DNA of 52,332 bases, the filler included, from Trichosphaerium sp. ATCC 40318 (Eukaryota > Protista > Tubulinea): assembly GCA_038496445.1 (NCBI GenBank). It is 3 parts of 3 records of this genome, joined end to end, with 100 filler letters (N's around TTAATTAATTAA, not from the genome) between each part and the next. Parts side by side here need not be neighbours in the genome. Positions count along the whole stretch, not along the records: positions 35,001 to 52,332 come from JALMLS010000617.1; 2 more parts are not named here. One strand, written 5' to 3'. Within the stretch, counting starts at the first letter, position 1. Each line of letters begins with the position of its first letter. Below, one piece after another: positions 35,001-52,332 of this stretch. The notes below the pieces were generated by a model. It was given only the letters and a program-made list of their open reading frames with translations. It had not been told where the DNA came from and ran no database searches. Made by a program: the position numbers and the translations under genes.

Positions 35001-35052
35001 AACTTACGATTGTTAATAATTTTTATCTAAAGGCTGTATGTACAGGCGCAAC

Positions 35053-35525
35053 AGGCCATGTAGAAGCATTAGAGGTTATTTATGAGCCTGAAGTTGATTT
35101 TCGTGAGTTGTGCAGGTTCTTTTTCCGTATGCATGATCCAACTACCCTCAATCGCCAAGGAAATGATAGGGGTATGTAACAAGAGCTAAATAGAGTGTTA
35201 TTACTGTTTTTTTTATAAAAGGTCATCATTTCTCCGTCTGACCTTCGTAACAGGCACTCAGTACCGTAGCGGTATCTACTACACAGATGACGATCAAAAA
35301 AAGATAGCAGAAGAAGTTAAAGCTGAAATCGGGTCCTCAGGAAAGTACAGCAGTCCAATCGTTACTGAAATTGAGAAACTTGATAAGTTCTGGGATGCTG
35401 AGGACTATCATCAGGTATGTCACGTTTATTGTTAACCAGGATTTTTTGGTTTTTGTTTGACACTTCTTTAGGATTACCTTGAAAAGAACCCAGGTGGTTA
35501 TTGTAACCACAAACTTCGCTGGTAG
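35053..35525 (+). CDS. msrA: Peptide methionine sulfoxide reductase A, 5' end truncated by the gap
   Basis: [50 protein letters not shown] across three exons. Confidence 0.95.
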
Positions 35526-35734
35526 GACGTCCGAAACGGTTTATTTTGTACACCCTCATCAATAAAACATTCTTTTTAAAAAAACCTAGACTCACGTGCT
35601 TGTCTGGTGCTTTTAACGTAAATTCTTCTCGCGCAATGCGAGGAACAAAGAAAGTAACAAAAGCAGTGTAGGCTGTTGGTTTAATGTGCCTCACAGTCCA
35701 ATCAAGTAAACAGGTGTATAAATTTGTGAGTTAA

Positions 35735-36529
35735 ATGTCAGCAAAAAGACAACACACTCAAATACAGAGGGTTACACCACTTTCTCTGATACCATCAGAG
35801 ATATTAACATCTGTTTTGCGTTATTTAAATAGGTATAATCGCATTAGAGCTTCTACAGTCTCTCATCTATTCAATGACATCATTCGTCATAATATTGGTT
35901 TTGATGAGATCAATATCAAAGACTCAGAAGATTGTCACGTGTTAAAAGACAGCCCTTTCCTAAAAAACACCATCATCAAATTTAGGGGTACCATACGTTC
36001 TAAGAAGGATTTATTATGCCTTGTTGGCGTTCGTTCAATAAGTCTTCTGATGTCAAATATTACAGATGATGGTATACTTGCTTTAGTAAACGGAGGAAAG
36101 CACAACATTCATTACATCAACTTAAAATTTTGCTTTCACATAACAGATGTCGCATTAAAAGCTCTAGCTGGCATACACACGGTTTGCATTAATGGTAGCA
36201 ACAATGTCACTTGTGAAGGGATAAAGGCACTGAAGGATGTACATACCTTATATCTTTACCAACCAAAGGACTCTTGGCTCAAACAGCTAGACAATGTGCA
36301 TACAGTAGATATTGAATTCGGGTCTGAAATAACAGATGATGGCATCAAATCATTGGTCAATGTCAAGCGTCTATGTTTGAGATATTGTTTTACTGTAACA
36401 TCCTCAGGATTAAAGGAATTGGTCAATCTTGAATACCTTAAGCTTAAAAAGTGTAGTGTCGGTATGATTACAGAGGCCTATCGGCAACACATGAAATCTA
36501 ATGGTATAACATATGTATGTAAAAAATAA
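35735..36529 (+). CDS. Intronless F-box + LRR protein (264 aa)
   Basis: LSLIPSEILTSVLRYL...STVSHLF (F-box); repeated ITDDGI..L LRR units. Confidence 0.88.
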   Translation: MSAKRQHTQIQRVTPLSLIPSEILTSVLRYLNRYNRIRASTVSHLFNDIIRHNIGFDEINIKDSEDCHVLKDSPFLKNTIIKFRGTIRSKKDLLCLVGVRSISLLMSNITDDGILALVNGGKHNIHYINLKFCFHITDVALKALAGIHTVCINGSNNVTCEGIKALKDVHTLYLYQPKDSWLKQLDNVHTVDIEFGSEITDDGIKSLVNVKRLCLRYCFTVTSSGLKELVNLEYLKLKKCSVGMITEAYRQHMKSNGITYVCKK

Positions 36530-37237
36530 AACCTGTTCAGGAACTACAATAAGACAAGCGGTACCTCCTTCTTTGTTGAGCCTGTTATGTATAAACTCAC
36601 AGTAAGCACGTGTATTTATTGACAGCAAAGACATTGCAGATGAATAGTAAAGTTCATAGCACGAACAGTTTTTTGCTTTATTTTAATTATTAATTAAACA
36701 TAGTACTTTTTTTTTGAGTCAGAACGTACCTCACAGCAATTTTATCACATTAACCTATTTTTACTACCTCTAACGGGGCTCGCTTGAATTTTCCTACAGA
36801 TAGGGTCCAATTTGTACTTTGGAGTGCCGGCATTGAAGAGATTCAGTTGCCATTGGAATTTAAGCTACAATTCAGAACTAAAAAGAAAGAACCATGTGCT
36901 GGCTGAAGAGAAAAACGAGAAAGAACGATTTTCAAATACGCGTTTACGAAAAGTTTTATGTAATTCAACACGTGTTCTATTTTCTTGACTACAGAAAGTA
37001 CAAGTAATTTCCTACAATTTCAAGTACCAGTTCTTGTATTGTGGAAAGCCGCTAATAGTGCTTTGTACTATGTAATTGAGCCATAAAAAATATTTGGTTC
37101 CTGTAAATCTGGAAAAAAGAAGTCGGGCAACCCGAAAAAGAAAACCGAAAATAAGAGAAATCAACAGTTGTTTTAAGTCAAGATCTATCCAAAAGAGGAG
37201 CGAAGAACTGTTAGATCACACCCCAGCAACTTAAATA

Positions 37238-37950
37238 ATGTCTATTTACTCTGATATTGCAAAACACCATGGCTGGACAGGTAGCGGAGGCTCGCCTGTA
37301 AAACCGCGAAAGAGTACGCCCACTACATTTAAAACAACAAGAAAGCACCTATTTCATTAAGTTAAAGGGTTGTGACTGATTCTAATTCTTGACATTGTAG
37401 ACTTGTATGTTGGTGTTGAGCTTCGAACAGGTAAAGAATTGGCAGCAAAAAATTTCAACGGAACGTCAGACCCTTACCTCAAAGTCATGGTTATTGCTGA
37501 GAGGAACAAAGACAAAACAATAAACAAGAAATTACCTGGTGATCCCTATGTCACAACGACCATTGAAAAGACACTAAATCCAACATGGAATGAGTTTACG
37601 TATCTGTACCAAGTGTATGCAGAAGAACAGGGATATTTAAAAATAGAGTGCTGGTATGTGTTGCAACGCAACTTTTTTTTTTTGAAGTTTTGAAATCACG
37701 TGATTTGTTTATGTTTTCCTTTAGGGATAAAAATCTTATTTTTGATGACTTTATGGGAGAGATCCTTGTTGATTTAACAAAACTGCAAAAAGAAACACTT
37801 GATATACCAAGCGTTGTGCATAAAGATGTGAAAAAAACACTTAAAGAGCGTATGAAACCAATGACACTTACATTGCAACCACGAAAAGGTAGAAGAGATG
37901 TAGTAAGTGGTACCATAGACATAGGTATATCACTTGCTTTCATTTCATGA
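37238..37950 (+). CDS. C2-domain protein (3 exons)
   Basis: GKELAAKNFNGTSDPYLKV, KTLNPTWNE, IECW/DKNLIFDDFMG. Confidence 0.88.
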
Positions 37951-38728
37951 TGTATCAGTGATCTTCGCTAGTATAATAAAAACAAGGTTAATTTCTTATT
38001 GCAGACTTGTATTAGTCAATATATTGATGGTACATAACTACGGTGATTGCAGATATTGTCGGGTATTGTTCAATTTTCTACAAGCAAAAATGTGTAGCTT
38101 TTAGGTAATTTACTTAGAGCGCGTGCTATGAACTGTACACTTTTCATTCGACTATGTTTTGGCAATGGATACACCTATTTATTGGATTGGTATGTGCATG
38201 TAACCTCATAACAGAAAGCTCCACGTGGTGTCAACTGTGTGATACAATTCAATGAAAATGGAAGAAACGTTTGATCAGCAAGTTTTGCTGTCAGTTTATT
38301 AACACAGAGCTATTCCTTTCAACCTTTGCTCTAATCTGATCAAACCTATCTGTGCTGAACTCAACAATTTCATTCTCCAATATTTTCATCTGTATTTGAG
38401 AGATGCGCTACACCCATTACTCTAAACTAACCGATTGTAATGTTATAGCATTAACTTTATATTCAGAAGCCGTTTATTACAACACGTGCTGTTAGTGCTT
38501 CCTTTATCGGAAAAAACTCAGAGCGTGTTCATGAAATTGTACCATCGTCCACAAAGACTTCTTTGTCAATACATGCACCTATTTATGTGGAAAGCAAGTC
38601 TACTGCAACAACCTCATAAAAGAAAGTTCCACGCGGTGTAATTCAACACGTGAATTCAATGAAAACTTGAGAAAAGTTCGCAACTTTTTGGCTGAGTCAT
38701 TTTCCAATCAAAAACCGTATTAAACAAC

Positions 38729-39484
38729 ATGAACCGCAACGCATCAACTGATATTTCCTCTACAAATGGACCTAACCTTAACACTGGTATTGCAACAGAG
38801 ATTGCGCCTGGTTTCGTCTTAATTAGAGGAGGATTGGATGTATCAACTCAGAAATGGCTGGCAAAGTATACAATGGAACTAGGCAATCGACAAAAGCTCG
38901 GTTTTTGGGCTGAAAAAGACAATGGTGAAAAAATACTAAATTCAGCGAAAAGTCGAGGTCGTATGTACGACGCGTTGGATAAATTTCCTTCAAGCAAAGA
39001 CTTGAATGATTTGTGTCAAAGCTTAGTTTCAATGGCGAAAGGTGTAACCGATATGCCTTCAATGACAGCAACACATTTGAACATTTTGTACTATGGATCA
39101 AATAATGGCATTTATTGGCATGCGGACGATGATGACAATGATGGTGATGGAGATAGTCCGATTGTATCTATAAGCCTCGGTGACGAAGGAGACTATGGGT
39201 ATAAACTTCTAGGAAGGGAAAAGGAGTACGTACACCTTAAATCAGGTGATGTTTTGTTATGGGGAGGTGTCAACAGGATGTTATGGCACAACGTTGAAAA
39301 AGTAATGCCTGGCACGTGTCCAGAGTTTTTAAAGGATTCTTTATCTACTGGACGTTTAAACTTTACTTTCCGGGACTCACCTTCTGTATTGGGTAAGGAA
39401 GAAGAACATAGGTACTATGTAAATGGATATGGTTATAAACATGTTGAAATGAACTGGCTAGAAAAAAATCGGAACAAAGAATGA
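38729..39484 (+). CDS. AlkB-family 2OG-Fe(II) dioxygenase, intronless
   Basis: HxD (WHAD), PIVSISLG, LKSGDVLLWGG..R..WH, RLNFTFR. Confidence 0.9.
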   Translation: MNRNASTDISSTNGPNLNTGIATEIAPGFVLIRGGLDVSTQKWLAKYTMELGNRQKLGFWAEKDNGEKILNSAKSRGRMYDALDKFPSSKDLNDLCQSLVSMAKGVTDMPSMTATHLNILYYGSNNGIYWHADDDDNDGDGDSPIVSISLGDEGDYGYKLLGREKEYVHLKSGDVLLWGGVNRMLWHNVEKVMPGTCPEFLKDSLSTGRLNFTFRDSPSVLGKEEEHRYYVNGYGYKHVEMNWLEKNRNKE

Positions 39485-40625
39485 AAGGTTGTATTAGCTT
39501 GCTTTTTAACTATTGTGTATCAAATAAACGAGTTTGTTATTTAAACTTGCTTACTTACAGTGTTGTTCACACAAGTCATTCATCTAATGAGGTTATTGGT
39601 TAAAACCAAACCTACCAATGAGTAAAAATGTAAGCAATAGAAGTCTATATTTTAATATCTCATTTTTTTTTTTTGTTTTTTTTGACGCGAAGGTAGTAAA
39701 TTGAGTGGTTGCAAAAGTGTTTTAGTATTTACACGTGCTAGCCATTTACAAGTACAGTCTTTAATACTCACTAAACACCCGAAATCCGGGTTAACTCCTC
39801 ACGTTCAATATTTGTAACTGTATCAACAACGTGTTTGGTAAGGAACTTATTATCCCATTAAGTACATCTACCAGTTTCAGTGTACTAGATCGCACTTTGT
39901 TGTGCTATAAAGGAGAACTGGATGGAGTGGTGAGAAAAAACACTTCCATCATTCACCGGCGACTGAGTACTCAATTTGGTGATGGGAGACAAAGCACTTC
40001 CATTACATTTCCAGATTTTACTCACTCCCGAAAAAAGACTCTTACTCACAAAGTTGTTTCACCATTGTATATACGCTTTATAGTAGCTGGTAAGAGCATT
40101 ACTGAGTAAGTCAAAAACTATTGCACTGATTTACATCCGACCTTGTTAAATAATACTACTCAAATAAAAACAAATACAAGAATTGATGACACGTGACTAG
40201 ATCACATGATATCTTTTTATAACGCGTGCTGCATTCACCTAAAATTCTTTAGAACTTTTGTTGTAAATGGCAGTGAAACGCACGGTACAGTTTCATATCT
40301 CTGCCATGTTTTTAACGCTTTGTTTTTAGTTAAATACCGAAATCTCAGCACACCCTTCTCTGTTAAACCTTCCAGTAGAGCTACAACTTGATATAATAGA
40401 CTTGGATACTAATTTATACTTACATTTTTTTTTTTAGAATAAGAGGCAGCGCGCTAGCGCCTACTTTATTACATAGGGATTTTTACATTGGATAACGACT
40501 TACAAATGTGCGTGTACAACAGGAAAAGCCAGAGTGTCTAGGAGATTCGATCAAGCCAGTACAAAGGAACACCAGAGAAGCCAAATATACGGAACCAATG
40601 AGATAATAAAGCAGATCACTGAAAG

Positions 40626-42561
40626 CTATACCTGGTTAAGTTTTTTACGCTCTTCGTACCAACGAGCCCGTAGATTTTGGATGTTAGAGAGAGAGGTATC
40701 AACACGCTCACCAGCTACCACTTTTTTCCGCCAGTGTGCTTCCAATTCAGTGCGAAAAGCCGACTCCAAGTCGGGTTTGAGAATAGAACCAGAAGTTGAG
40801 ACAGGTACCTTGGGAGCAGGTGAAGAAGAAGGAGAAGGCCTAACCAGTGGTGGGTGCGTACTTGGACGCTGGTTAGAGATGGTAGGTCTAGGCAACACAC
40901 GTGGTTTTTTGTTAGCTACTCGTTGGGGACCTACAAAGCTTCGCTTGCCCAACTTGAACTCATCGAGGCCAGACTCGTCCAAGAACTCAATACTTCTTGC
41001 CTTTTTTTGAGCTGCCAGATAATCTGCTTTGCCTTTGAAAATCTTAAAAACCAGATAATTTTTGTGACGCTTAATAACTTGGAACGTCTCCAACCCTTCT
41101 ATCACCTTGGAGCACCAAAAAACGCACCCATTAGAGGCCAGTTTGTGTTTTTCTGTGAGCCAGCGACGGAAGAAAAGAAGCTTGACATCCATAACCTTAC
41201 AGAACTCGGTGCATAATAATAACATGTCATTGCCTGACTCAGTATTGTGGAAGCCCGAAATCACAATCTTGGTACAGTTGTGGGCAATAGTGTACATGTT
41301 GACGCCTCGGTTTTGAAATGAGCGTCTGATGTTTTGGATGCGGTCATTGTCCAGCTTACTCATATACACAGCTACAGTTAGTCCAAATTCATACTCCCTG
41401 GCAGTCACAACTGTATTATCCTTGTTTTTGCAGATGTTTTTGACGATGATATCACTAGCCTCCTCGAACGCCTTTTGAACATCCACTGGAGCTTTGGACT
41501 CACCGCTACCCTTACAGTACTAAAATGAAAAGTGTAAAAATAGCGATAATCACCCCCAAAAATCTCGGGAATTTTAGACCCTCATTATCGGCCAATTTCA
41601 TCCAAAAATCACGGGGTGAATTATCGCAAAAATCTCCAGTGTAATTCTCGCAAAAATCTCCAGTGTAATTCTCACAAAAATCTCTGGTGTAATTCTCTCA
41701 AAAATCTCTGGTGGTGAATTTCATTAAACGTCTTATACAAACACAATATTTATTAAAGTTTTACAAGTAAATACAAATATTAGGGGTTAGGGGTTAGGGG
41801 TTAGGGGTTAGGGGTTAGGGGAAAATTACAAGTCGTCTCGCTCTTATTGTTGAATCGTATGCTGTAGTTAATTTTGTACAAATAATTAGTACCACCTAAT
41901 ATACCCATGTAATCATTAATGCGCATACATTTAACCACGTACTTGAAAGTTTAATGATATTTTGGCTTATTGTTAAAGCGCTGTAATAAAAATGGTTAGT
42001 ATGGCATTAATTGTGTTTATGGGTTAATATAGAGAGTTTTGTTAAATAATATAGAACGCATCTTAAAATGTTAAGTTTGCCATATCAAATTGACCATGTA
42101 CTTTTTTTACAGAGATTTTTTGTATAATTGCAGTTTATTGAGATTTTTTTTAAAATTACACAACAAAAGAGAGTTTTTGTAAATTTACACTTTTGTGTCA
42201 GAGATTTTTCATAAAATTACACACCAAAAGAGATTTTTTGTAAATTTACACTTTTACTACAATGTAATTTTTGTGGAAATCTCCAAAATTACACGTTTTT
42301 TGTGTAATTTGTAGGAAATCTCTGCAAAATTCTCAATTTATTTTTAGTACTGATAGTAATGAGGTCTGAGTAGATCTCCACCTTAACGATCCAAAGAATA
42401 AGACCCTCTGTACCTTCTTGTTTTAGTCTCGCAGACTGTGCACTCTCGATTGTTTGGACCACATTAATAAGCGCATCCTTAACAACACTAACAGTTTGTT
42501 GTTGTGGCAAACTATTGGCTAAATCAGCCATAGCACTGTCAATGGTGGAGTTGTTGGCCAT
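40626..42561 (-). CDS. ORF1-like protein (365 aa when 42561-42353 is joined to 41514-40626), interrupted by the MITE
   Basis: 209+889=1098 nt, in frame (...YSDLITI-KGSGESKAPVDVQ...). The TVAVYM...TKIVISGF...FCKVMDV...YLVFKIF pattern recalls RRM-type ORF1 of L1/Tx1 elements. Pro/Ser-rich tail. Confidence 0.65.
41515..42352. mobile_element. 838-bp MITE with 11-bp TIR CAGTACTAAAA, subterminal repeats and an internal telomere-like array
   Basis: CAGTACTAAAA...TTTTAGTACTG. 24-bp tandem x4 (AAAAATCTC core) on the left and inverted GAGATTTTT copies on the right. Precise removal restores the ORF. Confidence 0.85.
41780..41821 (+). repeat. (TTAGGGG)6 telomere-like repeat
   Basis: Six perfect 7-bp units. 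Confidence 0.95.
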
Positions 42562-42879
42562 GTTCCTGGTTTGGTGAATAGAGTGAGCAACACGTATACA
42601 CTAGAATTTTCAATGAACATCGGAAAATTAGATTTAGCGAACATGAAAGTGAAGACAAATGGCCTATAGGTCCTAGCGACCTGCGACAAGCATACTACAA
42701 ACACTTTGTAACATTTTGGGCTCAAAGGGCCCAAAGTGTTACCAAGACATACAGGGATACCCTAGGGCGTAAAATATGAGAAAGAAATAAAATAAGTTGA
42801 AGAGAAGCTGCAATCACCAGGCAGTTAAGCCGGCCTCCTACTAATTTATACTTACAATGGCCTCTTCTTTCAAAACAAG

Positions 42880-43939
42880 CAGGTCTAAAAAAATATACCA
42901 GTTTTTTTGGTATATACCACTTTTATACCACTTTTTTATACCAGTTTTTTATGGTATATACCAAAAAAAGTGGTATATTTTGACCGAAATATACCAAAAA
43001 AAGTGGTATATTGACCAAATATACCAACAATATACCAAAAAAAACAGGTATAAAAACAGAAAATATACCACTTTTTTTCACCAGAAAAAAAAAAATATAC
43101 CACTTTTTTATACCACTTTTTTTAGGTATATACCAGTTATATACCACTTTTTTATACCAGTTTTTCATGGTATATACCACTCTTATATACCACTTTATGC
43201 TTACTTATAGTACACCTGCAATTCCAGAAAATACACTTTATTTAATACACAGTTTGTGAGTTACAAGTTTTGGACAATGTCCACTACAGTTACATTACTA
43301 TGGGCATCTGGAAAATTCGTCCATCTCCATGAGCTTGCTGTACCTACTGTAAAAACATGCTGCGCACCTAATGAAAGTGGTTCCACCTGAATCTATCAAT
43401 TACTAAGGCCTACGGAGGTCGGTTAATGTATATCAAACGAAAATAAAATAAAACTTTGTCTGGTACCCACGAACGTCTGTATAATACCTGCAATATAGTT
43501 TCCTCAATGTTGGTACTGGAATCAGGTCCTGCGGTCCGAATGAGCTTGGTTTGGTTAGATTCTATGATATACTAAGGTCCCTACGCACCGTTCAATGTAT
43601 GACGTCCATGATCGTTCAACAAGAAAACCCATTACCAAAAAGCTCCTTAATGACCTTCTTGAAGCATACCATAAAAGTGGTATATACCAATAAAAAGGTG
43701 GTATATACCACATACCATAAAAAAGTGGTATATACCACTTTATATACCATTTTTAGAAGGTCTCATTATGTGAATGAAAAGTGGTATATACCACTTCTAT
43801 ATACCACTTTTTTATTCACTTAATTTTTAAAAAAAGTGGTATTTCAAAATGGTATATACCAGTTCATATACCATTTTGTTGAAAAAAGTGGTATATACCA
43901 TAAAAAAACTGGTATATACCACTTTAATTTTTAGACCTG
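42880..43939. mobile_element. 1060-bp CAGGTCT-family non-autonomous TIR element, 2-bp TSD (AG)
   Basis: ag|CAGGTCTAAAAA...TTTTTAGACCTG|ag, with GGTATATACC arrays at both ends. Removing it with one AG restores the host frame and the paralog's residue spacing. Confidence 0.92.
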
Positions 43940-45115
43940 AGGAGCAATGGCAACAAGGTTTGATTATGATGTTAAAAAACATGGCAAATGGACACAGCGT
44001 TATAAATCAAGGATTTTAGTTCAAGAGAATTGGAAACATGGTAAACTTCATGGTCTTCAGAAGGTAGGTATCGTTGTATTGATAAAATATGTGAGCAATG
44101 TCATTATGTGGATGACAAACGTGATGGAGAGTACAAGTCATGGTATGAGAATGGTCAATTAATGGAGCTTACTCAATATGCCAATGGTGAATTTGAAGGA
44201 GAGCGTACCAAGTGGCATTATAATGGTGAAATAAGTCTTAACTGTTTCTATGTCAATGGTAGACTAGAAGGAGAATACGGAGAGTGGTATAATAATGGAC
44301 AGCTGAGAGAACAATGTCATTTTGTGAATGGTAAACAAGTAGGTGAGTACAATAAGTGGTGTAAGAGTGGCATCCTGGTTAAGAAGAATCACTATGTTAA
44401 TGAAAAATTAGAAGAAGAGGTTACACCCCAGTGTACTGGTAACACAATGATAGAGAAAGATGATACAGATATACTTAATGATGATGCACTATTTTCTTAC
44501 CATCACAGCAACTGTAAAATTCATCAACACGACTATTCGTTTTAGCTGTTCATAAAAAAGTAACTTACAGTTTAACGCAATTTATTCATGCTTGTTTAGC
44601 ACTTAAACTAAACATTAATCCAGCACCAACAATATTGTTAACATATATACTAGTGTTGAGTCTGTAATTTGAGCCTCACTAGGAACTAGTGATATAGACA
44701 ACTAATATGTCAGTTCTTTGCCATTTTTGTGTGAGTAAGGTTGCTGCTTTAACATTATGAACTATTAACAATCGAGATTTTGTAGTCAGCTATGCCAGGC
44801 TTTGAAAAGACATGCAACGATGTACACTCTTACACGCTGTCATGTTTCAACTGACTAATAGAGGTAGGTCACGGGAGTTGCTGTCCGTATTAGTAGGAAC
44901 TTTTGCTATTAATAGGAGGAAACACCTAACATCTGGCCAATACTCTCAGTCAAGAACTACAATCTAGATCGAACAACAGAGGTAAAGCAAGTATGGAATT
45001 CACATCGGAGACTAAACATGTGGCATTATTCACATTTATCCTATTTATCCGCTTGTTTAAGCTCGTGGTAAGTTAAGTGCACGAATTAGCATTGATTGGT
45101 AACTGCTAGCGGAAA

Positions 45116-48100
45116 ATGAAACAAAGTCGTATTTTAATACTGATAATCTCATTTACGTACATACTTTCCACGTGGTCCCAAAAGCCTACTTTACGTATTG
45201 GTACTGTTTTTGTAAATGATGGGTTTGTTGCTGCTATTCAGAACCGTATAGTACAAGGACAACAGATGTGGCAAGAAGAGGTACCAAGGAATATTCTTAT
45301 TACAATAATCTGACTTTATTTTATTCAGGTCAATGATCGCGGAGGTATCGTCATAAATGGCACCGAACATCTTGTCGAAATAATCAAAGTTGGAGTTCGT
45401 ACGCCGCGGAGTTCGTACAGTTTTTTTAATAATACCAACAACCTGTAGCACAATTTCCTTGGAGTGCATCTATAAACGGTACAATGGAAATTATAAATCA
45501 AGGTGTTGATTTTATATTGCTGGTACGAATATTGCGCAACAACACGTGGTACAGCAAATTCACTAATGAAGTTTAGCCTTTTTCATCTGAAAGGGGAGAA
45601 TTGGGTGCTATTGTGGCGAACGAGCATAAAATCAACTCAATAATACGCACGTGATTAATTTATTTTTAATTTTTGCGCTAGTTGTTTTTTATTAATATTC
45701 GAAAATAGCATCCGCCGGTACACCGTCTGTATTTATCTGTGACAAAGTATTAAGACCGCCGTGTGCTGTTCCTTTTGGGAGAAGGTTTAAATACTCTGTT
45801 GGATTGACTCTACCAAGTGTAAAGCACTACACCGAATCTCTTAATCTGTTAGCTAGTCATGGTGCTCGTACTGTAGCCGTCATTTGGGAAGGTATGTTCA
45901 AACTCTTTTCTACAATTAAAGAGTTTACCAGATACTTAGATTTGTTGATTTCGAATGCCGTGATAGAAGGAACGTTGAGATCTATTTCATTTCTAAATCT
46001 ACAAATTGTGTACCAAAAACAAATACCATATACTGCGATCCCAGCTCTTCGAAGAAGTACAATGCGACCGATTGTCGAAGAAGTCAAGGAAAAGAATCCA
46101 GGCGCGCATAAAAACAAAAACAAAAACTTACACATTGAGAGAGTCTAACATGAGGAGCACCTTTAGATATCATAGTGATGGCAACAATTTTCGCTTGTGA
46201 AGATTTTATTGTTCTTGCAAAAGAACTTGATTTTAATGCAAACGTACGTACTGAATGACGGACTCTTCAGTTGCTGGAAGTTGCAAATCATTTTTAGTTC
46301 GTTTTTTGCACTTCTCGAAACACTATTCTTCAACGAGCTATTTTGGTCTAACTTTGTTAAAAGGCATATTTATTTTCGGCTCAATGTATTGGACTACTCA
46401 TAAAGAATACTGGTGAAGACTCAAAGCATGTCTTGGCTGGTGGATTTATAGTAAGATATCTATCGTACACTGTGATGTATTGTTTAACTTATTTATGTAG
46501 TGGGATGAAAGGTTGAGAACTGATTTATACGATGAAACTGACAACAACACAGCATTCCATCATTTTGTAAGCAATGGCACAATTGCGTCACCAATGATAT
46601 TCAATGACAAGTATACACAACGGTTTGGAGAAGCACCAGGTACTGCTGGCGCTGAAGGATATGTTTCTGGATATGTCATTCAATATGCTTATGAAACTGC
46701 AAAGTACGATACATACTCCTTCACTTTTCACGTGAAACATCACAATCGCGATTAAGCGCCACCCTTTTTGGAAGTAATGTTTTGATTTTAGCACCTTCGA
46801 CAGCGATAAACTTCAAATGACAATTGATGCTATGGATATCACTGGGTTTTATGGAGAGGTTGCGTTTGATAGGTTTGGTCAGAATCTTGGAAGGAATGGA
46901 TTGACGTACCAAGTCGGAGATGATCTCAGTTTTGATATTGTTGCTCCTCTTTTCGCTGCAACCACACAGTTGGTTTATCCAGTTCCAAAATGGAATGAAC
47001 GTCAAACAACTTTTGGATGGTACAGTACGTACTTTGTTTGTTGTCTCATTTTGGATATTGATTGTTCTGATTCATTATTTTCAAGAACAAACAAGTGAGC
47101 ATGTGATGCTTTGTTTGGTCAGTGCTGTAATATTAATCACTTGCGGTCTCATTATCTGGGTGTTAATATGTCGCCACAATCGAGTGATACGTGCTTCACA
47201 ACCACTGTTTGTTGTGCTTACTCTTGTACGTGTATCTAACTCAATGTAATACCTATCACGTGATGAATTACGAGTTTAATATGCTGTGAAAAAGTCTGCG
47301 CGATTTGATTTCTCAAAATCACGTGATAGGCTGCGTTTCCGAAATGTACTCATAGTTCTGTTTAGATTGGAACAATATTCATGTATGCGGCAGTGTTTTT
47401 TTGGACACTTCATACAGATGACGTTCATTGTAATGTTGTCAGATGGCTTCTAGGAGTTGGCTTTGGAGTAAGTAGAATTTATAAAGTTTGTTGAATAATG
47501 CCTGACACGTGATTAGTTGACTTATGGAGCAATGTTTGCTCGTATTTACAGAATTGGTCAGATATTTCTTGAAAAAAGTTTGGAAGTCTTCAAAGTCACA
47601 AACATGATGATCATTCCAATTGTTACTGGTATTGTCACCACCGAAGTATTAATATTAGCTGTGTGGACAGGCGTGAGTCCATCAAGAGCTGAACGAGAAG
47701 AAGTGGCACCATACATTCTATCTGATGACTACTTTGATTGTACCAATACAACAATAGATACAGTCTTCATATCAGTGCTCCTTGTATTCAATGCATCAGT
47801 GCTGCTGTACGGTATTTATTGGGTTTATAGAATATGGAGATTGAAGGCAGTTCTGTACAACGAATCAAAGTACGACAGTAGCAATATATTTTAAACACTT
47901 CTGACTGTTTAATAGAGCGATTGGTTTTGCCGTTTACACTCTTACGTTCTTCATCATTATCTTGATCATCATTCAGGTACCTTACCCCAAGTCTAACACT
48001 AAGAGTCATGTACGGCGTTAATAGCCTGTTAGGTGTTTGGCAGTAGTAATCGTTCAGTTGCGTTTATTCTTCGTTCATTGTGTCTTATTCTTGGACCTTT

Positions 48101-48374
48101 CATCTCCATCTTATCAATTCTTATTCCGAGAATGTACTACATGACACTGTCGAATGAAGAGATTGATAGAAGTGATACACGCAGTAACAGTGTAAACAGG
48201 AACACGGTTACCTCAGAACATTCAAAGCCGAACGCACACCTTTCAAAGACAAGTGTAAATGTAGAAGAGCTTCAAGCGACCATAGAAGTGCTTCAACATG
48301 AAGTAAAGAAACTGAAGAAAAACCTTGCGAAAGCATTACAATCAAGTAATGACACAAAAAATGAAGAACTCTAG
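45116..48374 (+). CDS. Class C (GABA-B-like) GPCR with N-terminal periplasmic-binding-protein (Venus flytrap) domain
   Basis: Signal peptide. VNDRGGIVING, TGFYGEVAFDRFGQN (PBP1 fold). VIRASQPLF, WLLGVGFG/LTYGAMFARIYRI, YNESK (7tm_3). C-terminal coiled coil. Confidence 0.9.
47252..47330. repeat. 79-bp intronic segment bounded by the 13-bp inverted repeat CCTATCACGTGAT
   Basis: cctatcacgtgat...atcacgtgatagg; absent from the matching intron of the second GPCR copy. Confidence 0.6.
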
Positions 48375-48439
48375 TTTGTAAATAATTTTATGTTTGTAAT
48401 AATTAGTTGTGGCGAACTATTTTTCCGTCATGTCACAAC

Positions 48440-48670
48440 TTTTCTCTGAACAATCCAATCCATAAATACACCTCCTTTTTCACAAAGAACTCTACAATGA
48501 AGACTTTTCGATTCGGGAATAGTGAAGAAATATGTAGCATACTTTGCAGTTTCATAGGCGTATCCAGAAACATATCCTTAAGCACCAGCATACCCGGTTC
48601 TTCTCCAAAGCTTTGCGTATACGTGTTGAATATCATTGGTGACACAATTGTGCCATTGCTTACGCTGGAA
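48440..48670 (-). pseudogene. Inverted degenerate fragment of a GPCR exon
   Basis: The reverse complement matches ~46570-46710 (caatggcacaattg..tcaccaatgatattcaa...ggatatgtttctggata...tatgaaactgcaaagta) with indels. Confidence 0.85.
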
Positions 48671-49222
48671 CTCTGCTATTGTATTTTAACACTAAGCCTA
48701 CTTTTTAAAAGCGGCCTGATTTATCACGCATGTGACTTACTGCTCTTATGCTTGTAAATGACTCCAGGATAATAGCTTGCAAGGTTGCACCAGGCTACCT
48801 ATGTTCACAAACTGCACCAGTGCTAACACAACAACACATGGTGCCTCTGGTACGTAAAGATTAGATGAATGCTCCTTAGCCCTACAAAACATAATGTAGA
48901 TCTCACTAACAGTGCACCGACGTACCGTCTAAGGACCATTTTACGTCTATGTAGTCGAAGAGGTGAAGATAAAATTCTTGTAAAGAATATTAACAATGGT
49001 AAATTACCAAACGCAGATAGACAAACACTATCTTCGTTACAATCAAACTTTGATTTCTCACTGAAATCAGCTGCACTAAATGAACCAACTCGGACAGTTT
49101 AATGACTAATAAGCGATATCTCAGGACTGGACTCGTATCGGTGTTTGCCACTCTAACAAGTTTTACTATTTTGCAAACTAAAATTGATAAATTTTATACT
49201 TGTTCAACAATACTTCAAACGC

Positions 49223-49565
49223 AATGACAGAAGCAAACAATGTCGAACCTCAAGTAAAGAAGCTCCTAGAAGAATGGACAGAACACTGTGAGATCGTTAC
49301 TAAAAGGAGGTCAAGCACTCATAGTCGTACAAACCATGAAACGTTCAAAACAATAGTAGAGATTGGTAAACCCGCTCTACCAACAATATTCAAGTCATAC
49401 GAACAAGAAGAACACAATTTGCTCTATTTCTTCCTTTTAGAAGCAATCATAGCTGGAGACATTTATAGGGATGTCCCAGGTGTACGACAACAGAATAAAG
49501 AAGATTGGATGGCCTATGCAAGGGAAAATGGGTATTTGCAAACTTACACAGAATGTAAAGAATAA
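49223..49565 (+). CDS. Small intronless helical hypothetical protein
   Basis: Clean 113-aa ORF with the pattern W..H...SS......H..F..IV.IG..ALP.I...LL..I...W..Y.RENGY. Confidence 0.65.
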
Positions 49566-49909
49566 ACTCCATAAATAGACAAGACATTTACTATTTTGTA
49601 ATCAAGCTCATTTCTTTCACTCAAAATCATTTGCAGTAAAACAATATCTCAAACATAGACGCTAGATATTCACCAATGATTTGATGCCATCATCTGTTAA
49701 TTGAGACAGTTTTAACATGCACATACGTACGTGAGCCAAGACTCCTTTGACATAGCTAAAAGAACTGATCTGTATTCAAATTGACCTTGTCTATCCCATT
49801 TTCTGAAACCATCTCTCCTCTGAACCAGTGGTAAATCATCACTAGCGCATAGTTTAAGCTCGAAGTAAGTTAAGTTCTGTTGAATCAGAATAACGGTTAA
49901 CGGCTGACA

Positions 49910-52332
49910 ATGAAGCGAAGTAGAATTTTAATACTAGTACTCATTTACGTATATACTTACCACGTGGTCCCAAAAGCCAACTTTACGTATTGGTACTGTG
50001 TTTTTAAATGACGGGTTCAGTGCTGCGATTCAAAACCGCGTAGTACAAGGACAACAGATGTGGCAAGAAGAGGTAATTTGGGAGATATCTTTGTAACAAT
50101 TATCTGACGTATTTTTAATTCAGGTCAATGATCGCGGAGGTATAGTTATAAACGGTACAGAACACCTTGTTGAAATAATCAAAGTTGGAGTTCGTACGCG
50201 AGAGTTCGAACCGTTTTTAACTACCTGTAGCACAATTTCCTTTGAGTGCATCTACGAATGGTACAATGGAACTGATAAACCAGGGAGTTGATTTTTTATT
50301 GCTGGTACGAATATTGCGCAACGACACGTGGTACAGCAAATTTACGAATGAAGTTTAGCCTTTTTCATCTGAAAGGGGAGAATTAGGTGCTATTGTGGCG
50401 AACGAGCATAAAATCAACTCAATAATACGCACGTGATTTTCGAGTTAAGTTTTTCTGGTTTTAGTCTTTGACGTACACTTTTGTTGATAGTCTACAATAG
50501 CATTCGCTGGTAACCTTCTGTGATCTGTGATAAAGGATGAGCCATGTCGCTGTTCCTTTTGGAAGGCGGTTTAAATACTCTGTTGGATTGACTCTACCAA
50601 GTGTAAAGCACTACACCGAATCTCTTAATCTGTTAGCTAGTCATGGTGCTCGTACTGTAGCCATTATTTGGGAAGGTATGTCAACGAAGCGAACTGTTTG
50701 GGTAATTGCAATATGTAGATATGTTGATTTCGAATGCTGTGATTGAAGGAGCGTTGAGATCTATTTCGTTTCAAAATCTAAACATTATATACAAAAAACA
50801 AATACCTTTTATTGCGATCCCAGCCCTTCGAAGAAATACAATGCGACCGATTGTTGAAGAAGTCAAGGAAAAGAATCCAGGCACGCAAAAACAAAACCTA
50901 AACTTTGAGAAAGTCTAACATGAGGAGCGATTTTAGATATCATAGTGATGGCAACATTTTTCGCTTGTGAAGATTTTATTGTTCTTGCAAAAGAACTTGA
51001 CTTTAATGCAAACGTACGTTTGTCGTCCGTATTTTTTGCTATTCTTCGTAGTATTCTTTGCAATTTTGGCAATAAATCGTTCTGGTTTGATATAGCCATT
51101 AAGTGACCTCTCTAATCTCAAATCACTAATTTCGATTTAAGGCATATTTATTTTCGGCTCAATGTATTACTACACTTGTTAAGAAAACTGTTGAAGACTC
51201 AAAGTATATCTTGGCCGGCGGATTTATAGTAAGATATATCTCTGACTACGCTGTATTGTTTAACTTGTTTATGTAGTGGGATGAGAGGTTGAGAACTGAT
51301 TTATACGATGAGACCGACAACAACACAGATTTCCATCATTTTGTAAGCAATGGAAGAATTGCGTCACCCATGATATTCTACAACAAGTATATACAACGCT
51401 TTGGAGAAGCGCCACGCACTGCTGGTGCTGAAGGATATGTTTCTGGATATGTCATTCAATACGCTTATGAAACTGCAAAGTACGATAAATATAGATTTAC
51501 GCACGTGGTAAATGTTGAGTTTAGCACCTTCGACAGCGATAAACTTCAAATGACAATTGATGCTATGGATATCACTGGGTTTTATGGAGAGGTTGCGTTT
51601 GATAGGTTTGGTCAGAATCTTGGAAGGAATGGATTGACGTACCAAGTCGGAGATGATCTCAGTTTTGATATTGTTGCTCCTCTTTTCGCTGCAACCACAC
51701 AGCTGGTTTATCCAGTTCCAAATGGAATGAACGTCAAACAACTTGGATGGTACAGTACGTACTTTATCCTTTTTTTGATCTCTTTTCGCATTGATTCTTC
51801 TGATTTATTGTTTTCAAGAGCAAACGAGTGAGCATGTGATGCTTTGTTTGGTCAGTATTGTCATATTAATCACTTTTGGTATGATCGTCTGGGTGTTAAT
51901 ATGTCGCCACAATCGAGTGATACGTGCTTCACAACCACTGTTGTTGTGCTTACTCTTGTACGTATATTCAACTATTGATGGCCCTCAGGCTGTATACTAA
52001 AAAACGCCTAAAATACAACAACTCACTTTTCTGTAGTTTGGAACAATCTTTATGTATGCGACGGTCTTTTTTTGGACACTTCACACAGATGACGTTCATT
52101 GTAATGTTGTCAGATGGCTTCTAGGAGTTGGCTTTGGAGTAAGTTGAATTTATAAACTCGTTTGTTGTATATGCCTGACACGTGATTAGTTGACTTATGG
52201 AGCAATGTTTGCTCGTATTTACAGAATTGGTCAGATATTTCTTGAAAAAAGTTTGGAAGTCTTCAAAGTCACAAACATGATGATCATTCCAATTGTTACT
52301 GGTATTGTCACCACTGAAGTATTAATATTAGC
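49910..52332 (+). pseudogene. Second, tandem class C GPCR copy with multiple 1-bp frameshifts (pseudogene or consensus errors); runs off the window
   Basis: Exon-by-exon near identity to 45116-47655. Deletions near 49938, 50510-50545, 51720 and 51940. Confidence 0.8.

Follow-up and report, generated by a model that had tools for sequence, protein, structure and literature searches.

What kind of RNA gave rise to the unit that lies on the minus strand at positions 42838-40425 of a genomic stretch from the protist Trichosphaerium sp. ATCC 40318 (assembly GCA_038496445.1), between two identical 18-bp repeats, and was that RNA itself mobile? The window, meaning the whole stretch of DNA that was analysed, is 52,332 nucleotides long and joins three parts of three records; the unit belongs to JALMLS010000617.1 (positions 35,001-52,332, ~17.3 kb, GC ~36%), and our within-genome scans cover these 17 kb. 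A first-pass annotation had described the locus as a full-length, HAL1-like retroelement that encodes only the ORF1 protein of a long interspersed nuclear element (LINE). Our analysis shows a unit with the ends of a reverse-transcribed, polyadenylated RNA and with a genuine but broken coding region, and it tentatively points to a mobile source for that RNA.

The case for retroposition is carried by the ends of the unit. A repeat search identified an 18-bp direct repeat, TACTAATTTATACTTACA, in two copies that are 100% identical and 2432 bp apart (40407-40424 and 42839-42856), as the first-pass annotation had reported. In 200 random Markov-1 sequences with the size (17.3 kb) and composition of the piece, the maximum length of exact direct repeats within 5 kb was most often 13 bp, reached 17 bp once and never 18 bp. 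The sequences flanking the outer side of both copies are unrelated, so that the repeat does not extend into a larger duplication. On the minus strand, an uninterrupted run of eleven A's (A11, 40435-40425; T11 on the plus strand) directly adjoins the copy at 40407-40424 and is preceded, 29 nt ahead, by an AATAAA signal at 40470-40465, while at the opposite end the unit begins at 42838 with GGAGGCC (more fully, GGAGGCCGGC), next to the copy that reads TGTAAGTATAAATTAGTA on this strand (42856-42839). The tail, the signal and the GGAGG-type 5' end are all as first described. A scan of both strands for runs of at least eight A's behind which upstream sequence is repeated yielded three candidates, one of which is this unit; the second lies inside a GGTATATACC repeat array and the "repeat" of the third is merely a run of A's. 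Since the 18/18 target-site duplication (TSD) exceeds the random controls, directly abuts A11 and is the only one of the poly(A)/repeat candidates to hold up, we consider the signature of target-primed reverse transcription (TPRT) to be real and the unit to be, very probably, a TPRT copy of some RNA, in support of the mechanism proposed beforehand. The reconstructed empty site has the order ...GACTTGGA-TACTAATTTATACTTACA-ATGGCCTC..., and the inferred first-strand nick lies at 5'-TTACA^ATGG-3' on the other strand of the target. This site is unlike the T-rich site of the L1 endonuclease, and therefore the tail would not have been primed by base pairing to a run of T's.

Without the insert that now interrupts it, the unit is 1584 nt long, and the stretch including the insert measures ~2.4 kb. 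The earlier argument that a unit of 1576 bp has no room for a reverse transcriptase (RT) or an endonuclease (EN) is correct in its substance, whereas its length gives way to 1584 nt once the insert is removed exactly. The 17-kb piece contains no real RT motif, since [YF]xDD is matched just twice (at 44105 and 38555), in both cases by a lone tetrapeptide outside the unit, one in a MORN-repeat gene and the other in a stop-containing frame. These observations support a source RNA that was short and polyadenylated and that encoded no RT or endonuclease. Additionally, Rfam and tRNA scans detected neither a head resembling a short interspersed nuclear element (SINE) nor a tRNA target, and the 17-kb piece has no tRNA gene.

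The coding part of the unit has been disrupted. Behind a 5' leader of 277 nt (42562-42838, minus strand; GC 0.42, five upstream ATGs), which agrees with the 5' untranslated region (UTR) originally annotated, the open reading frame (ORF) that we call ORFa starts with an ATG at 42561-42559 and covers 70 codons (42352-42561, minus strand; frame analysis) up to an 830-bp insert at 41520-42349. On the far side of the insert, ORFb occupies 40626-41519 on the minus strand, with 297 codons (41519-40629) and a TAG stop at 40628-40626, and is followed by a 3' UTR of 190 nt (40436-40625). The insert is bordered by the palindrome AGTACT, which contains TA, at 41516-41521 and 42346-42351; because these two copies are 830 bp apart, the same 1584-nt sequence is restored whichever duplication inside the hexamer is chosen. 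After exact removal of the insert, ORFa runs for 108 codons to a TGA and the frame of ORFb is open for 308 codons, 11 of them beyond the insert, and lacks an ATG near the beginning; the two frames share 148 nt, where ORFb is read in the -1 frame (region 42385-41420, minus strand). The frame break is located between 42385 and roughly 41490, and, since it falls within ~45 nt of the inserted transposon, it may be linked to the insertion; alternatively, a 1-nt indel may have arisen in this copy alone. As it stands, this copy is non-coding and cannot make a protein of ~360 aa. The single intronless ORF of 365 aa that had been reported is not in the sequence, and the 838-bp excision needed to obtain it matches no repeat or splice boundary. 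Programmed -1 frameshifting was considered as well and rejected, the 148-nt overlap being devoid of a canonical X XXY YYZ heptamer.

The insert itself has a GC content of 0.30, short CTAAAA termini and no ORF, and its two arms of ~250 bp are inverted and align with each other (41603-41713 against 42100-42310). The arms are built of units of 24-30 nt, with CAAAAATCTCCGGTGTAATTCTCG repeated 4.6 times at 41603-41713 and with units in inverse orientation at 42100-42310. On the basis of these repeats and of the arm alignment, the insert is a DNA transposon of the foldback type or of the type of miniature inverted-repeat transposable elements (MITE), with a target duplication of its own (AGTACT or TA), and not a spliceosomal intron. 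It resembles known foldback/MITE transposons in its long inverted arms of short subterminal repeats, its AT-richness, the lack of an ORF and the short target duplication, and it differs from them in carrying an internal (TTAGGGG)6 tract, a perfect run of a telomere-like heptamer at 41780-41821. Helitron and hAT identities do not fit its ends.

Despite this damage, ORFb is a real coding sequence that is, or recently was, a gene, because its open frame of 297-308 codons exceeds the longest stop-free run (211 codons) found in all 200 random sequences. Its product is basic (isoelectric point, pI, 9.7) and is predicted to consist of an alpha/beta region, a Pro/Ser/Lys/Arg-rich linker of 60 residues with a pI of 12, and two C-terminal helices, while ORFa is acidic (pI 4.3). 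The two were handled separately in the protein searches and in folding, and their join after removal of the insert was inspected for frames. The C-terminal helices are the only part predicted with confidence by AlphaFold (predicted local distance difference test score, pLDDT, ~90); otherwise the single-sequence models were too poor to use (pLDDT 48.6 for the 297-aa part and 42.4 for a 184-aa core). With a threshold of E<=1, Pfam revealed no Transposase_22, RRM, PRE_C2HC, zf-CCHC or other real family, and returned as noise sub-threshold matches to DUF4590, ELO and Apolipo_F; a pattern scan showed that the C-x2-C-x4-H-x4-C knuckle is absent from the protein. ORFb had no match in a word-indexed search of 5.8 billion clusters, none at E<=1e-3 in an exhaustive phmmer search of 1.84 billion cluster representatives, none in translated scans of metagenome and viral (IMG/VR) contigs, and nothing beyond a chance match (E 0.36) in a phmmer search of the PDB. 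The pattern of the 3' tail was likewise not found in metagenome contigs. By these comparisons the protein is a basic orphan. The resemblance to RRM-type L1/Tx1 ORF1 proteins that had been suggested therefore fails in the Pfam, CCHC-pattern and PDB searches, gains nothing from the unusable AlphaFold models, and retains a single hint from a language-model Atlas, whose nearest neighbours of the protein reach a similarity of 0.82-0.87 with ~140 of 256 shared features and a recognition score of 2164, below the thresholds of 0.9 and 2300 and in a range that shuffled proteins often reach. These neighbours are arthropod clusters carrying RRM_1, DUF4780, PRE_C2HC or zf-CCHC, a repertoire which the typology of ORF1 proteins assigns to LINE ORF1 proteins of type I (PMC4120745). 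Being sub-threshold, the neighbourhood may serve as a lead towards a LINE-ORF1 type and is not a test of it.

Regarding the source of the RNA, we give a probability of roughly 45% to a non-autonomous, protein-coding poly(A) retroposon, of which the present unit would be a dead copy. Several features lean in this direction. The GC content at third codon positions (GC3) is 0.48 in ORFb and 0.41 in ORFa, compared to 0.33-0.37 in all eight host ORFs of the piece (F-box/LRR, AlkB, MORN, three exons of a G protein-coupled receptor (GPCR) gene, an ANF-like ORF and ORF49200), and both UTRs have a GC content of 0.42, compared to ~0.34-0.37 in the flanks; this composition, being unlike that of the host ORFs, suggests a mobile or foreign source. 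Besides, five upstream ATGs lie in the 277-nt leader of the unit, in a genome whose introns are short, and the product of the unit is a pI 9.7 protein with a pI 12 linker; both points argue for a mobile source. Host mRNAs that become retrocopied tend to derive from highly expressed, conserved genes, and hence the orphan status of the protein argues in the same sense, as do the Atlas neighbours, all of them with RRM, DUF4780, PRE_C2HC or zf-CCHC domains, although their scores are sub-threshold.

A number of observations weigh against this interpretation. In addition to the empty Pfam and CCHC searches and to Atlas scores within reach of shuffled proteins, the 17-kb piece has no second copy of the unit, no LINE and no RT; the composition contrast involves eight ORFs from one 17-kb neighbourhood, which is a small sample; and the copy is broken and so shows no selection for coding. 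Moreover, the succession of leader, coding sequence, UTR, AAUAAA and poly(A) is equally fitting for a full-length processed pseudogene, and orphan host genes are expected in a host lineage as poorly sampled as this one, where the neighbouring AlkB protein has a best match of 52% identity.

The strongest competitor is a processed pseudogene: a lineage-specific host gene would have given a spliced mRNA that a LINE copied in trans over its full length, and the copy would have decayed since then through the frame break and the transposon. The order of parts matches an mRNA exactly (leader, a single coding region, 3' UTR of 190 nt, AATAAA at the canonical 29 nt), with a TSD on either side, and the unit agrees with LINE-made processed pseudogenes in its poly(A), in a TSD within their range of 10-20 bp, in the absence of introns and in the decay after insertion; the lack of an ORF1-type domain and of a second copy in the piece likewise speak for it. 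Nevertheless, GC3 and UTR GC stand well above those of the neighbouring host genes and flanks where a host-like composition would be anticipated, within the limits of a small sample, the long leader with its five upstream ATGs also counts against it, and orphan status is unusual for the abundantly expressed genes that feed retrocopying, so that we consider this explanation rather unlikely. The reading as a half-LINE, in which an element keeps ORF1 alone, is possible, unproven, and slightly favoured over a host-gene retrocopy. If instead an autonomous LINE had lost its ORF2 in this copy only, with no family behind it, the same TPRT hallmarks and an element-like composition and leader would result; yet there is no mark of a deletion junction, and the stop codon, 3' UTR and AATAAA look like an ordinary gene end, which makes a one-off deletion very unlikely. 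An mRNA of a non-retroviral virus, endogenised by the LINE machinery of the host, would account for the foreign-looking composition, the single basic orphan protein, the poly(A) and the TSD, whereas no viral relative appeared in the protein library or in IMG/VR and most viral mRNAs have no leader like this one of 277 nt with upstream ATGs; we regard such an origin as highly improbable.

Two further explanations give the insert a role in splicing. The unit could be a functional retrogene or element whose transcripts lose the transposon by splicing, as a newly acquired intron, given that, among GT-AG pairs, only a donor AAG/GTGGAG (42381) with an acceptor TTTTAG/ (41520) unites the frames and has a good pyrimidine-rich acceptor, removing 862 nt and giving a protein of 357 aa. 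CGTGAT-like motifs upstream of this acceptor recall those of host introns, and the frame break is close to the insert. However, the host GT-AG introns are short (~50 and ~130 nt, two introns of the neighbouring GPCR gene read by eye), and the donor is cryptic and its use would delete 11 codons, for which reasons we find a functional spliced gene improbable, if marginally easier to accept than the LINE deletion. The remaining alternative, an ordinary two-exon host gene whose flanking 18-bp repeat is a coincidence, takes up the division of the coding region into two parts 830 bp apart, but none of the 200 random sequences reached such a repeat, which here exactly abuts the A11 tail, the sequence in the place of an intron is a foldback transposon flanked by a separate target duplication, and the frames of ORFa and ORFb do not join at the insert. 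This explanation was already disfavoured, and its probability is close to nil.

In the preferred reading, TPRT pasted a polyadenylated RNA of ~1.58 kb into the locus, and a LINE residing elsewhere in the genome would have provided the RT and the endonuclease in trans. As read from the sequence, the first strand was nicked at TTACA^ATGG rather than at a T-rich site of the L1 type, a second nick 18 nt away produced the 18-bp duplication, and the cDNA reached the 5' end of the RNA; a foldback-type DNA transposon sits inside the coding region, and a -1 offset lies within ~45 nt of its insertion site. The source RNA, most likely a mobile non-autonomous retroposon in itself and not an ordinary host mRNA, would have carried a long leader, a single basic protein, the 190-nt 3' UTR and its own AAUAAA, and the protein would probably bind nucleic acids and be functionally "ORF1-like". 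A more elaborate version of this proposal, which we hold to be rather doubtful, envisages a self-chaperoning half-LINE family with an orphan-fold protein unlike the classified ORF1 proteins, perhaps made through a -1 frame change from ORFa to ORFb, and mobilised by a LINE that nicks non-T-rich sites.

How such an element would relate to known retroposons can be judged by comparison with two ORF1-only derivatives and with the classes of ORF1 proteins. HAL1 is an L1 derivative of mammals that encodes only ORF1p, arose several times and is mobilised in trans (PMC5753468, citing Smit 1999 and Bao & Jurka 2010). As a non-autonomous poly(A) retroposon with one ORF and without RT or EN, HAL1 is similar to the unit, in which a TSD and poly(A) are present and coding capacity for RT/EN is lacking. 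By contrast, the ORF of HAL1 is recognisably an L1 ORF1 (Transposase_22, with coiled coil, RRM and C-terminal domain), while the protein of the unit has no such match in Pfam, no CCHC pattern and no PDB relative by phmmer, and has only the sub-threshold Atlas lead; the nick site of the unit is not T-rich, and the insert of 830 bp and the -1 offset leave no intact ORF in this copy. Judged by these searches, the assignment to HAL1-like elements fails on recognisable ORF1 homology, the one defining feature that the analysis covers beyond the hallmarks of TPRT. A more direct precedent is TRE5-A.2 of Dictyostelium, an ORF1-only element of a protist with the structure AB-ORF1-BC, from which most of ORF2 is deleted and for whose efficient mobilisation TRE5-A.1 provides its ORF2 protein in trans (PMC3159450). 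We found no sequence relation between TRE5-A.2 and the unit, and TRE5-A integrates ~50 bp upstream of tRNA genes, unlike the unit, whose 17-kb surroundings contain none. ORF1-only LINE derivatives are thus already known from mammals and from a protist, and the unit is less novel than the first-pass annotation held.

In the scheme of LINE ORF1 types I-V (Khazina & Weichenrieder, as summarized in PMC4120745), the protein of the unit is comparable in being basic and in the prediction of an alpha/beta core flanked by helices, and the differences lie in the features which that summary attaches to the types, as Pfam and the pattern scan found no CCHC (I), Transposase_22 (II), PHD (III) or esterase (IV) in the protein of the unit. 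If the protein is an ORF1, it would accordingly fall into type V, the unclassified group of this scheme. Should copies exist genome-wide, the unit would join TRE5-A.2 as the second protist case in which a parasite of LINEs has retained an RNA-binding protein of its own; if true, this would add an unclassified ORF1 type and bear on the bypass of cis-preference and on the origin of ORF1 proteins. As it stands, the locus shows only that TPRT machinery which depends on poly(A) and acts in trans is, or was until recently, present in this AT-rich eukaryote, a result that is useful for annotation and not surprising.

Some features of the unit and of its surroundings complete the picture. The 3' UTR contains a palindromic GC stretch at 40461-40444 that had been annotated as a GC hairpin, but the fold test gave a 5-bp stem with a z of -0.30, and 72 of 200 shuffles folded as well, so that a role as a recognition element was discarded. 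Another foldback-like element (42857-43930) directly adjoins the TSD on the 5' side of the unit, with arms at ~42890-43200 and 43660-43925 around a unique core of ~450 bp; the palindrome GGTATATACC fills these arms, with 11 copies compared to 0.02 expected. Weak Rfam matches to miRNA families at 43721-43862 are just hairpins of this element. Altogether, at least three insertions of mobile elements have accumulated in this intergenic patch.

The genes around the patch, as identified by Pfam, encode an F-box/LRR protein (35735-36529), an AlkB-type 2OG-Fe(II) oxygenase (38729-39484), a MORN-repeat protein (44108-44545) and a multi-exon class-C (7tm_3) receptor (46920-48374). A further ORF at 51289-51831 had no Pfam match, and a receptor ligand-binding domain is only a guess for its product. 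Because the best database relative of the AlkB protein is only 52% identical, the lineage is absent from the collections searched. The gene content, a GC of ~36% and the short GT-AG introns are compatible with a microbial eukaryote whose lineage is unsampled. Within the same piece, the palindrome TCACGTGA occurs four times (37696, 46728, 47256 and 47319) compared to 0.23 expected. At 37696 and 47319 it precedes a YAG acceptor by ~20-40 nt in apparent short introns, the copy at 47256 shares the intron of that at 47319, and at 47509 a shorter CGTGAT stands immediately next to a TTAG acceptor. The palindrome may therefore be an extended branch site or an intron-borne element of this lineage.

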